From positions 1,612,001 through 1,676,000 of the forward strand of contig JBLDXI010000020.1 of NCBI GenBank assembly GCA_047495785.1: 64,000 nt of DNA, in the 5' to 3' direction. Each line of letters opens with the position of its first letter. Position 1 is the first letter of the stretch. The DNA is from Lepidodermella squamata. Its lineage: Eukaryota; Animalia; Gastrotricha. Shown one piece after another: positions 28,015-58,462 of this stretch. Below the pieces are notes generated by a model. That model was not told where the DNA came from. It did not search any database and worked only from the letters and a program-made list of their open reading frames with translations. The position numbers were made by a program, and so were the translations under genes.

Positions 28015-29119
28015 GAATGTGATTTTTATTTATCTGTGATAATTTTAGTATAGTACTTTTTATGACAGCTAGTGACTGCAATGTCGATTGAAATCGGCAG
28101 GAGCGTATTGTAAAATATTAATGAATACAAGCCCTTTTAACTCATCGTTTATCATCTATTACAACCTGGTTTGAGTGAAAGAGTGGCATTTGCGAATTTT
28201 CATTGTTTTTTTCAATCGAATTTTAAGCATCACAAGACAATGATAATTACATTTTTACCCCTGAAGGGACATGTCAATGTATCGCTACGAATCTTTTACC
28301 CAAACGTATTGCAGGCAATATATTTCCAGCAGATCGCGGAGCATAACTCTTACACGTGGTTACGATGTTCAAATGTCTTCAAATCCCACACAGTATAAGG
28401 AATGCAGGGTCATTTGAGGTTCAAATTATGAAGTCAAATTCCAATATAGCTAAGTACCCTATTATATTACTAATTAATTGATGCAAATGTTTCCAGTGAA
28501 ACTCAATCTTGCGTGTTCAGGTTTATTCTCAGCATCAGATATCGTCTCCTGAACTGAATGTCCGAAAGAAATCGATGAAAACATTGCTTGATATTTTTTT
28601 GCATAGGTGCGGGCTTCAACGGACCGATCAAGCTTAAGTGATTCGCTTCATGTGATGAGATTCTAATCAGGATAAATGATTGCCAAGTCGGGGCGCCAAC
28701 CTTTGCCCACCTGTGATGGACGATTTTTGTGCCTGTTATCGGATAATTGAGATTTCCTAATGATGGCCATTCCTTCCTCTCAGAAAAAGGTTGTTTGTAG
28801 TTATTGACTTAGCCATGGACTAAAAGCAACCTGAATTTTCAATTAAATGAAATTGAAACGCTATGTCTTTGAAATGTCCGAAGTCAACCCTCTGTTTTAA
28901 TGAAGATTGAAAAACCGAAAAACGCATGCTTTATTTTTTTAGTGATAACATTCTCGCTGAGGTGCACTTTTAATTTCAGACTTCTTAACACAATATCTCA
29001 AAAACTGGGTAATAAAGTCATTAAACGCGATGATAATATAAAATATTCCTCATGGTATATCAAAAAGACTGTATAATACGACGACGAGGGTTCCATTATG
29101 TTGCATTGGCTCCAGCTTT

Positions 29120-29436
29120 TTAGCGACCCCATTTGAAAATGTTGTGCTTGTAGCCTTTAAGGCCATTGACATCTCCACTGGTTCGCTTGCTCATCGAATT
29201 GTAGCCGTCGCTGTAAAAAAACGTATAAATCAATATAACTAAAGGTGCTTGAGATGAAAATATTACTATTGCGCTTCGTCGAGAACGTTTTGAAGCCAGT
29301 TCAAAAGTTCCGCCTTGTCTTCATCGTTGACAGTATCTTCATCTTCGATAAGCATTGAAGGATTTGCGCTGGCGCAAGAGATCATCAGGGCTACCAAAAA
29401 CCCAGCCAAGGCGAGGATCAAAATTCGGGTGTCCAT
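29120..29436 (-). CDS. Neuropeptide precursor 1 (86 aa), predicted TSGDVNGLKGYKHNIFKW-amide
   Basis: Exons 29436-29267 and 29210-29120 (56 bp GT-AG intron): MDTRILILALAGFLVALMISCASA (signal) NPSMLIEDEDTVNDEDKAELLNWLQNVLDEAQYDGYNSMS-KR-TSGDVNGLKGYKHNIFKW-GR*. Not in the ORF track. Confidence 0.88.
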
Positions 29437-30576
29437 TTTCCTGAAATGCTCTACTGAATTAATATCTAAATGTTAAAATGTTATAGTAAGGATAAACAGG
29501 GACAATTGAGGGTTGGCGATAAGCCTGGCGTCTGAATACAAGACTTCAAAAACAAATAATGATGTGCGTGTTGTGCTGTCTGAGGGTTTCGGGCGATTTT
29601 CGCACCGCTTTATATTTCGAGGGTGTTATAATTCAGCGGCGACGATGATGGCGATGACGAAGAGGGAGAGAGAGAGAGAGCCGCGTAGGCGTAGGGCTTG
29701 TTCATTTCTACAGCCGGGAACGATTACAAATTATTGGCGATGATGGCGAAAATTCGCCAAAAGGCGCGATGAGGCTATAATTTATATGCATTTTTCGCCG
29801 ACGTAGCCGCAAAATGCGCACCTAATAAATACGTGTCCGCCGTTGGTGCCCGAAGTGGTTGATTATTTATTACTCATATTTATACATGGATGGCGATGGA
29901 AACACGATGTCAAATGCCAGGAGCGCAGATGCCGCTTATTGATAAAAAAAATTGCTAATCGAACGTATTAAAGACCGACGCGTAGGATTATATACCACCC
30001 GTTTGTTAAAATTTTTGGTGTTTTTTTTCCCCGTTGCTAACATTTAAATTGCTCTTCGTAATTTTCGGTCACCTCTTGAGGCTGGTATTTCATTAAGTGG
30101 GCCTAAAAAAATAATGCAAATTGATCGGAAAAAGTGCAAGTTTAAAACAGCCATCATTATTCCTTATAAATAATCGATGCGCTGTTTTTCTGCTAAAATC
30201 TTCCTTAATTCTACCCACGTCGCTCTCTTTATTATATAGCTTTAGTCTTCAACTGCGCTTTTTTGCGTCGGCGTTATACAAAAAATGCAGATTTCCCTGT
30301 CAATCAATCGCAATTTAGGGAATAATCCCATCCTTTTATTTTGAACAATGTTCCTTCTTTTTTCCAGCGCGAGTCTGGAGATTAAAGATAACCAAGCGTA
30401 AAAGCCATTGATATGCCATTGATAAATTTTATTGATCAAATATATAACAAAACAAATGGTCTTGCCAATATTTTTCTCCCTTTCGGATGACACGCGATGA
30501 GAACAAAGTACAAAAATGCTGGTTAAACGTAACAGATATATAGGATTTTCCACTAGAAAAACGACCAGTTTTGGTT

Positions 30577-30921
30577 TTAGCCCCATTTGAAGACGTTCGG
30601 TTTGTAGCCTTTCGGCCCGTTTTCCGCCGCATGAGCTGCGTGCATTTTTCGCATTGAGTCAGAGCTAAGCGAGTCATCGCCAACAATTTCAGCGCCTGCT
30701 GTCCGTTTGCTAGCCCGCCCAGCATCTTCAACCGAGCTGCCATAGTCTAGATCGTCCAGGCTCAAACTAGCATCGTCCTTTCGACCGTCCATCAGAGCGT
30801 CGAGTAAGGCATCGACAAACTCTTGCGAATTCGATTCATCGCCTAACCGTTCAACGATGGGTCTCGCTTCACAAAACACAGCTAGGCAGAAAAGAGCGAT
30901 GGTGATTTTCATCATGATCAT
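30577..30921 (-). CDS. Neuropeptide precursor 2 (about 114 aa), predicted ...ENGPKGYKPNVFKW-amide
   Basis: Signal peptide MIMMKITIALFCLAVFCEA, acidic spacer, RK/KR/RK dibasic sites, terminal Gly; C-terminus clearly homologous to precursor 1. Confidence 0.88.
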   Translation of the reverse strand: MIMMKITIALFCLAVFCEARPIVERLGDESNSQEFVDALLDALMDGRKDDASLSLDDLDYGSSVEDAGRASKRTAGAEIVGDDSLSSDSMRKMHAAHAAENGPKGYKPNVFKWG

Positions 30922-32577
30922 TTTGAAAGCCGATGAAGTCAGTATAAAAAAGTCTATAAAAATGAAATTGTAAGCGACACGTGTCAACGACTCTTCAAAG
31001 CACTACCGCTTAGATAATTACAAACAGCCAAAAACGTGTCCTGTTTAGAAGGAAGTTGAAATCAATCGCTGAAAAGCAATTTCTTCCTGACACCTGGGCA
31101 AGAAGCGGTAGCTTTTAACGGTGATTAAAAATGTAGCCACCTGTTAAGACCGTTTGAAAAGCGATTTCACTGAAGGCTTATATAAGGATGCAAGGGCTAT
31201 TCAGATATTTTAATTGAAGAGCTTGGAATTCCGGTTAGCTAATATCCTTACATTGTCTTTTGTCTCGAAACTATAGAGTCGAATTCCAATACTTGTATTT
31301 CCTAAAATACGGTAAGGTACAGTCTAATTGATGCAAATTCTTGCTGTCCATCGGCTTCGTGGCATCTTCTGAGATGGATGTCCGACGAAAATAAAAAACA
31401 TTTTAGACAATTTTCGAAATATTTGCAGTTGCATTGAAAGCTAGGTATATGAGCAGACATGGCTGGGGAATGTGAACTATCAGGCGAAAGCAGTTGAAAA
31501 ATTTAGAATTATATATGACATTTGGGCTGGCTAATAAAGCAACCAATGACGTAAGTCATATGCAGGTTCTTTTACGCACACACCTTGATCGCAACTAAAA
31601 ACAGCCTGGGAAGCATCGAGCCCGATTTGATATCCTACGCGAATTTAAGATCCGATTTGCTCCGGTTACTTGCCAGGGTATCGGACAAATGTTGGGATAT
31701 AATGGCGAATTTGCGTATGTGATTTTGCGGGGTATTATAGCATCACTGCGGTCAGTGTTGGAGTGGCTATTTTCGATTTTCACGATGTTTTAATCCGTCG
31801 CATCGGGCCGTGATAAATAAATTAAAAATTGGAGCGAATGCATACCATAAACCCATTCAATCGCGATTTAATTAGCAAGAAGAGTGGTACAAAAAAATGT
31901 GCCGTCAAGGCGACACGATAGCCACTACGGTGTGAGCTATAGTATACTTATTGCTTGAACGAGCTAACAGCAAACAATAGGGTGAGCATGATGTGGTTTT
32001 AAATAGCACTCGAATCCAGAGTAATCCAAAGCGTGCCATCCGTCTACGCGTTTCAAGTGAAACCCCGAGCGCACGATGCAATTTGCCGCCGGATGTCAAC
32101 GAGTATTGCGACCGGTGAATGATTCACACAGGGCGCCGTCATAAAAATCTGATTCCTCTACACCACGATTAGGTCAGCATCAGCCAAAAGCGCATGAGAA
32201 CACACGGACGACCTGAAGTGAAATTCATTGCATTTTCTTTATTGTTTAAATCGCGTCTTCGAAGTTTTAAATTTAAAACCATATTATATAAGACAATAAT
32301 ATTTATGGGAAATGACGAGTTCGCGAGTTCATATATTCACAGCACGAACGACACGTATTTTGATCTTCGTATCACATTATTGAGAAAAATCAGCATCAAA
32401 GAAAAATAAAACAAGGAACGTAAAAAATAACGAAAAAAAAGATTGAAAAATCTCTTTTTTAAAGTGGAAATAAAAGGCAGCACACAAATTCAGGTAATTT
32501 TTTGTTTACAATTTAAGGAAGATTCTCAGAGCATTTAATATAAAAAGAGCAACGTATCATTTTTTGAGAGCAATTTT

Positions 32578-58234: not shown

Positions 58235-58462
58235 CTACTTCCGGCCCCAGCCGAACCTGAGTGGGGTGTAGTCGTCGGCACGCTTGTCCGCCCAGCCGTC
58301 CGCGCGGCCAACGGCGAAGGCGCGTTTGCGGTAGCTTTGAATCCGCTGCGACAGATCGCCGAAAAGTTCGTCGAAGTTGTCGCTATCTTCCACTTCAGCC
58401 GAAACGATGACCAGCACGACGGCGAGCATGATAGCAATAGCGGTAGCCCAGTTGAAGTTCAT
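58235..58462 (-). CDS. Neuropeptide precursor 3 (75 aa), predicted ADDYTPLRFGW-amide
   Basis: MNFNWATAIAIMLAVVLVIVSA (signal), acidic spacer, RKR-AFAVGRADGWAD-KR-ADDYTPLRFGW-GRK*; GC-rich coding island within AT-rich DNA. Confidence 0.88.
   Translation of the reverse strand: MNFNWATAIAIMLAVVLVIVSAEVEDSDNFDELFGDLSQRIQSYRKRAFAVGRADGWADKRADDYTPLRFGWGRK

Follow-up and report, generated by a model that had tools for sequence, protein, structure and literature searches.

We analysed a stretch of 64,000 nucleotides (hereafter the window; positions 1,612,001 to 1,676,000 of contig JBLDXI010000020.1, assembly GCA_047495785.1) from the gastrotrich Lepidodermella squamata, in which two adjacent genes on the same strand, gene 1 (29436-29120) and gene 2 (30921-30577), encode small prepropeptides with closely similar C-termini that are predicted to end in an F-K-W-amide. 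Positions are those of the window and the features lie on its minus strand, unless stated otherwise.

Structure and transcription of the FKW-amide pair

A sequence-only reading of this DNA had proposed that each of the two genes carries a signal sequence, an acidic spacer, a cleavage context S-K-R-T-[S/A]-G and one peptide at the C-terminus, and the open reading frames, their coordinates and the hydropathy agree with this arrangement. The signal sequences of both genes were assessed by hand, from hydropathy and the -3/-1 rule. Gene 1 encodes 86 residues in two exons, 29120 being the last base of its stop codon. The coding part of exon 1 (29267-29436) holds the predicted signal sequence (A-S-A before N) and the acidic spacer, the exon having 11 Asp or Glu codons versus 2 for Lys or Arg, and ends on two bases of a Tyr codon. 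It is followed by a predicted phase 2 intron of 56 nucleotides (29211-29266, GTAATA...TTTTTTTACAG), the sole in-frame GT-AG pairing that preserves the S-K-R context. Exon 2 (coding part including the stop, 29120-29210) encodes D-G-Y-N-S-M-S-K-R, the peptide and G-R-stop. Its K-R dibasic site lies at 29183-29188 in the context S-K-R-T-S-G, and the predicted mature peptide of 18 residues, T-S-G-D-V-N-G-L-K-G-Y-K-H-N-I-F-K-W (29129-29182), is followed by a Gly as the putative amide donor and an Arg that would be trimmed, the terminus reading N-G-L-K-G-Y-K-H-N-I-F-K-W-G-R-stop.

Gene 2 is a single open reading frame in one exon, of 114 codons and a stop (30577-30921, the A of its ATG being 30921). 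Its order is signal sequence, acidic spacer, S-K-R, a second spacer, R-K and the peptide, with the terminus N-G-P-K-G-Y-K-P-N-V-F-K-W-G-stop. The signal sequence, a heuristic prediction, comprises residues 1-19 (30865-30921) with a cut at C-E-A before R-P, and this A|R-P junction is also kept in the orthologue described below (P0001). The K-R site (residues 72-73, 30703-30708) stands in the context S-K-R-T-A-G, and the second dibasic site, R-K, occupies residues 91-92 (30646-30651); S-K-R, R-K-M and the final Gly are all invariant in the orthologue. The C-terminal peptide delimited by the orthologue alignment, M-H-A-A-H-A-A-E-N-G-P-K-G-Y-K-P-N-V-F-K-W together with the amide-donor Gly, is encoded at 30580-30645. 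A cut at K-R is predicted to give a mature form of 40 residues and a cut at R-K one of 21 residues.

We also observed that N-S-M-S-K-R of gene 1 (29183-29197) resembles both the after-cut context A-S-K-R-T-A-G and the before-cut context D-S-M-R-K of gene 2 (within 30646-30708). The extra 19-residue segment of gene 2 may have been gained by a partial internal duplication, or may have been lost from gene 1.

Both genes are transcribed, and the transcript of gene 1 is spliced, polyadenylated and provided with a leader. In a public whole-animal run (X1), contigs carrying the SMART cDNA oligo and a poly-T end are confined to 28914-29467 and 30564-30899, with none on the 1.1-kb intergenic spacer or the flanks; the contigs within exon 1 of gene 1 cover 29288-29401 and reach up to 29467. 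Coverage by a DNA-type run (X2) is even throughout this stretch, except for a dip at 30885-30969. One loose end of an X1 contig, before 29267, equals plus-strand positions 29195-29210 exactly, and a second holds the same joint of exon 1 and exon 2 on the other strand; the predicted intron of gene 1 is therefore removed precisely, which bears out the proposal that this precursor is split by an intron. A poly-T loose end before 28914 places the poly(A) site of gene 1 near that position, 16-21 nucleotides past an AATAAA at 28935-28930, and defines a 3' untranslated region of about 205 nucleotides (28914-29119). At the other end, the loose end behind 29467 marks a TAG acceptor (29466-29468), 29 nucleotides before the ATG, that is joined to about 21-24 non-genomic letters (...TGCGAATTTGATTTGTGTCTA), and these letters were not found in the 64-kb window even when 3 mismatches were allowed. 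A candidate trans-splice acceptor of the same layout is predicted for gene 2 (TAG at 30954-30956, context tttttatAG, 32 nucleotides before the ATG) and for the orthologous gene (TAG at about 783-785 of its contig, 38 nucleotides before the ATG). Over gene 1 the word depth of the X1 contigs reaches very high values (hundreds to thousands), far above those over gene 2; expression is poorly reflected by the depth of contigs, and we therefore draw no inference from this difference.

Conservation and proposed processing of the C-terminal peptide

The two genes share a C-terminal block in which 11 of the 14 residues are identical (pairwise E 1e-7), whereas no similarity to gene 2 is detectable in exon 1 of gene 1 (E 3.8); the sequence-only reading had likewise described the rest of the two precursors as diverged. 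At 4 of the 11 identical residues different synonymous codons are used; the duplication is therefore old, with the peptide held constant. No further F-[KR]-W-G was found in the six-frame translation of the window beyond these two genes.

In order to look for relatives, a profile built from the C-terminal regions of both genes (alignment A2) was run in a full HMMER scan of 1.84 billion protein representatives. The scan yielded one orthologue and no described family. There were two matches, P0001 and P0002, of which the second (608 residues) was discarded, being a low-complexity repeat that matched the spacer, and P0001 is the sole true relative. It is a protein of 123 residues (E 2e-10) that ends R-K-M-Q-A-A-H-A-A-E-N-S-L-K-N-Y-K-P-Q-V-F-K-W-G-stop, and its gene, without an intron, lies at 824-1195 of a 1.8-kb genomic contig (L001, 1-1802; a Logan contig from run SRR23086389). 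Over its full length P0001 is 45% identical to gene 2, and it is therefore taken as the gene 2 orthologue in a distant species. An orthologue of gene 1 was not found on L001, including the 607 nucleotides downstream of the P0001 gene, and a comparison of the flanking DNA of gene 1, gene 2 and the orthologue revealed no non-coding conservation.

Identity between P0001 and gene 2 is distributed very unevenly, with 24 of 71 residues identical before K-R, 9 of 19 from K-R to R-K and 17 of 22 after R-K. The proportion of nonsynonymous differences (pN) is 0.49 for the prepro part and 0.44 for the segment between the two dibasic sites, but only 0.14 over the 22 codons that follow R-K, with the proportion of synonymous differences (pS) at about 0.8, which is saturated. 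Purifying selection is focused on the C-terminal ~22 residues, where it had been suspected before a second species was at hand, and the pattern is that of a neuropeptide precursor, in which the mature end stays constant and the propiece can vary. The strong conservation starts just after R-K, which points to the 21-residue form as the active part of gene 2. Across the three sequences the core reads Y-K-[P/H]-[N/Q]-[V/I]-F-K-W-amide, the amidation being predicted. In the motif GYKxNxFKW given in the sequence-only reading, the Gly before Tyr and the Asn are not fixed, since the orthologue has Asn and Gln at these positions.

The propieces have one feature in common that we note separately, a short amphipathic acidic stretch present in all 3: A-E-L-L-N-W-L-Q-N-V-L-D-E in gene 1 (29340-29280), F-V-D-A-L-L-D-A-L-M-D in gene 2 (30820-30790) and V-I-D-A-L-Y-S-L-L-N-D on L001 (~935-975). 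This stretch may be a propeptide helix that serves in sorting or chaperoning.

We consider it probable that the two tandem paralogous genes encode small prepropeptides that each yield one C-terminally amidated signalling peptide. Both genes have a signal sequence, a dibasic site before the peptide and a Gly, with or without a basic residue, after it. By analogy with known prohormone biochemistry, the signal sequence would route the precursor into the secretory pathway, a prohormone convertase would cut on the C-terminal side of the conserved K-R and, in gene 2, probably of R-K as well, a carboxypeptidase would trim the terminal Arg of gene 1, and peptidylglycine alpha-amidating monooxygenase (PAM) would convert the terminal Gly to an amide on Trp. 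By this established chemistry both endings, W-G-stop in gene 2 and W-G-R-stop in gene 1, lead to a Trp-amide. The peptides may then be secreted from neurons or endocrine cells, and could act on a receptor for amidated aromatic ends, most likely a rhodopsin-type G protein-coupled receptor (GPCR) of the protostome RFamide/Wamide receptor expansion, or a peptide-gated channel. Receptors for amidated aromatic C-termini form such an expansion in protostomes (PMC8557429).

Several points weigh against this assignment. The transcript evidence comes from a public run of 2015 that is recorded only as a guessed RNA run, and it is the behaviour of its whole-animal contigs that is cDNA-like. The hand-assessed signal sequences are predictions and a weak point; the conservation rests on three sequences, given that a single orthologue, of gene 2, was recovered; and the mature peptide, its cell type and its receptor are all predictions. 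Among known [RK]-[FYW]-amide neuropeptides, it is uncommon for Lys rather than Arg to precede the amidated aromatic residue. Finally, the very high word depth over gene 1 could also be compatible with a gland product.

In a different explanation, the peptides are secreted for purposes other than signalling, as antimicrobial or defence peptides or as a gland secretion. Many antimicrobial and venom peptide precursors consist of a signal sequence, an acidic propiece, K-R and a cationic amidated peptide; the layout of the two genes fits these precursors, the short forms have a net charge of +3, and the high word depth over gene 1 would suit a gland secretion. However, the conservation is the reverse of that usual in defence peptides, the mature end being kept here and the prepro part diverged, and the longer, 40-residue product of gene 2 carries almost no net charge. 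Gly and Pro are also frequent in the core, and the low helical amphipathicity (hydrophobic moment, muH, 0.25-0.27) argues against a membrane-active peptide. On account of the conservation pattern and the low amphipathicity we regard a defence or gland peptide as unlikely, and an amidated signalling peptide as the preferred reading.

Searches for a described family

The FKW-amide peptides had been left without an assignment in the sequence-only reading, and Pfam, the full-library HMMER scan, the literature and two collections of precursors, one of them available in part, likewise gave no described family. At E 10 or better there was no Pfam match for gene 2, the gene 1 exons, P0001 or a third gene discussed below; the gene 1 protein was searched as separate exons. 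A word-indexed protein search returned 36 candidates for gene 2, none of them at E 10 or better, and no candidate for exon 1 of gene 1, and with a profile of gene 2 and its orthologue it returned the orthologue alone; this type of search is nearly blind here because the motif has no five-residue word free of variable positions. Scanning of metagenomes with the degenerate pattern K-G-Y-K-x-N-x-F-K-W-G gave 0 matches, and patterns derived from the profile gave 74 matches, 0 of which were confirmed by tblastn. The exact products of gene 2 and of the third gene have no record in public assemblies. In the literature FKWamide or KWamide was not found, nor was a neuropeptide paper with FKWG, NIFKW, NVFKW, GYKHN or GYKPN. 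FKWG is missing from 2.76 million characters of spiralian precursor files, and it was not found in the available portion of the files of a mollusc survey that includes two gastrotrich transcriptomes (PMC6425005). The protein-language-model neighbours of gene 2 are nearly all prohormone clusters (DH31, PDH, NPFF, QRFP, CCK, urotensin-2B and tachykinin, at 0.87-0.92), which is weak evidence. By sequence, the FKW-amide family is undescribed, and for the time being we file it under lineage-specific (gastrotrich) families of W-amide peptides.

Peptide signalling has hardly been explored in gastrotrichs, and the one survey found that covers them relied on homology and yielded few families (PMC6425005). 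We take the two genes to be genuine precursors of amidated signalling peptides, ordinary in mechanism, that represent an undescribed sequence family in an under-sampled phylum. Since it matches no described family, the predicted FKW-amide peptide is one more concrete ligand with which spiralian receptors could be deorphanised; this is useful to specialists and leaves the view of how such systems work unchanged.

Comparison with known families was made on the basis of peptide ends and precursor layout. The kinins (F-X-X-W-G/S/A-amide) resemble the FKW-amide pair in having a Phe and a Trp near the amidated end, and Drosophila leucokinin is also a single peptide late in its precursor. However, the pair has one residue between Phe and Trp and no second Gly, the end being F-K-W-NH2 and not F-X-X-W-G-NH2. 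With F-K-W followed by Gly and stop (or Arg), the spacing excludes kinin. The likeness to luqin-type peptides (RF/RY/RW-amides) lies in the basic-Trp-amide end preceded by Phe and in the K-x-Y-K stretch, but the pair and its orthologue have Lys and not Arg (3 of 3 sequences), and in the pair the peptide comes last in the precursor and Cys is absent downstream of the signal sequence. In luqin precursors the signal sequence is directly followed by the peptide, and the C-terminus carries two Cys spaced by about 10 residues (PMC7041311). Luqin is excluded by the Lys for Arg, the position of the peptide in the precursor and the missing Cys pair, and the earlier rejection of both families stands on these grounds. 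The QRFP/26RFa, PDF and myosuppressin precursors are alike in architecture only, with a signal sequence, a spacer, a dibasic site and one amidated peptide with a C-terminal Gly and basic residues, whereas neither a sequence match nor a Pfam match at E 10 or better connects them to the pair.

In another reading, the two genes stand in gastrotrichs for an ancient family of Bilateria (QRFP/26RFa, kisspeptin or luqin-type RW-amide) with spiralian receptors that are still orphan or with widely varying peptides. Vertebrate QRFP resembles the pair in layout, having one long C-terminal peptide that ends aromatic-basic-aromatic-Gly-basic, and it also has long and short forms from two basic sites; the language-model neighbours of gene 2 include a QRFP cluster (0.88). 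The echinoderm luqin K-P-Y-K-F-M-R-W-NH2 loosely matches K-G-Y-K-...-F-K-W-NH2 (PMC7041311), and spiralians have QRFP-type and kisspeptin-type receptors without a known ligand (PMC8557429). On the other side, there is no Pfam match to RFamide_26RFa or to any family, even at E 10, the luqin peptide position and Cys pair differ as described above, and the likeness is limited to 3-4 scattered residues. We therefore hold descent from one of these families to be improbable. Similarly improbable is the particular proposal that the FKW-amides are the missing protostome ligands of an orphan spiralian QRFP-type or kisspeptin-type receptor; only the single-peptide architecture with its C-terminal peptide, and a skeleton of Y-x-x-[N/Q]-x-F followed by a basic-aromatic-amide end, would then be left to recognise these ligands by.

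Likeness to MIP/allatostatin-B and a third gene in the window

Among the closest known systems are the W-amide peptides of the MIP/allatostatin-B type. The core of the FKW-amides is Tyr-X6-Trp-amide, with the same spacing as the W(X6)W of arthropod MIPs, and it shares with annelid and brachiopod MIPs the Trp-amide, an aromatic residue at position 1, Asn at 4 and, at 6 and 7, a hydrophobic and a basic residue. The comparison sequences were taken from the supplement of PMC7270403 (e.g. A-W-N-K-N-S-M-R-V-W and S-W-S-S-K-N-M-K-L-W). The FKW-amide pair also likely uses receptors for amidated aromatic ends, as MIPs do. The sequence-only reading had dismissed MIP, and it was right that the first Trp is absent, but the dismissal was too quick given the X6 spacing, the Asn at 4, the hydrophobic residue at 6 and the basic residue at 7. 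MIPs are defined by a conserved N-terminal Trp that precedes the last Trp by 5-8 residues (PMC6425005, PMC7270403). The FKW-amides have the C-terminal Trp and its predicted amide, but they have Tyr in place of the N-terminal Trp, Lys directly before the last Trp and a long N-terminal extension, and their genes encode one copy at the precursor C-terminus versus several copies per MIP precursor.

The pair could accordingly be divergent members of the MIP/allatostatin-B family with Tyr for the N-terminal Trp, belonging to a dispersed set of genes with one peptide each and acting on a MIP-type receptor (an SPR-type GPCR or a MIP-gated DEG/ENaC channel). An Ala in place of the first Trp is reported merely to lower receptor activation, in contrast to the last Trp, which is essential (PMC7270403). 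A third gene on the same strand of the window also ends in Y-X6-W-amide, with the L-R of the arthropod W-x-x-L-R-G-x-W. Against this, the defining N-terminal Trp is absent from 3 of 3 family sequences, MIPs usually have a small or aliphatic residue where the FKW-amides have Lys, the predicted peptides are 18-40 residues long versus 9-12 in MIPs, and the Asn at position 4 is Gln in the orthologue. The likeness is also a post-hoc match of a few positions, and the homology-based survey, which includes two gastrotrichs, reports no MIP for them (PMC6425005). Because the defining first Trp is absent we do not file the FKW-amide pair as MIP, and we look on a MIP origin as a serious but doubtful possibility. 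If the Tyr-X6-Trp-amide core did derive from MIP, W-amide signalling would exist in Rouphozoa (it is reported absent from flatworms), the 'defining' first Trp would be replaceable, and a normally multi-copy precursor would have been broken into many one-peptide genes along the chromosome.

The third prepropeptide gene (58235-58462) encodes 75 residues, with a predicted signal sequence, an acidic spacer, R-K-R, a piece of 12 residues, K-R and the end A-D-D-Y-T-P-L-R-F-G-W-G-R-K-stop. It has Y1, P3, F6 and W8 in common with gene 2. Among the 12 sites of the type W-G-[K/R/stop] in the six frames of the window, Tyr at the X6 spacing occurs only in gene 1, gene 2 and this gene. There is no Pfam match for it, Gastrin/CCK included, and, instead of being related to CCK/sulfakinin, it may be a remote paralogue of the FKW-amide pair.

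Elsewhere, the window has short spliceosomal introns and importin-like and MAP2K-like genes. It also holds a very large gene (33590-54113, minus strand) with dozens of Calx-beta-type repeats, a seven-helix end and unusually long exons, which by eye resembles an adhesion-GPCR of the ADGRV1/VLGR1 type.

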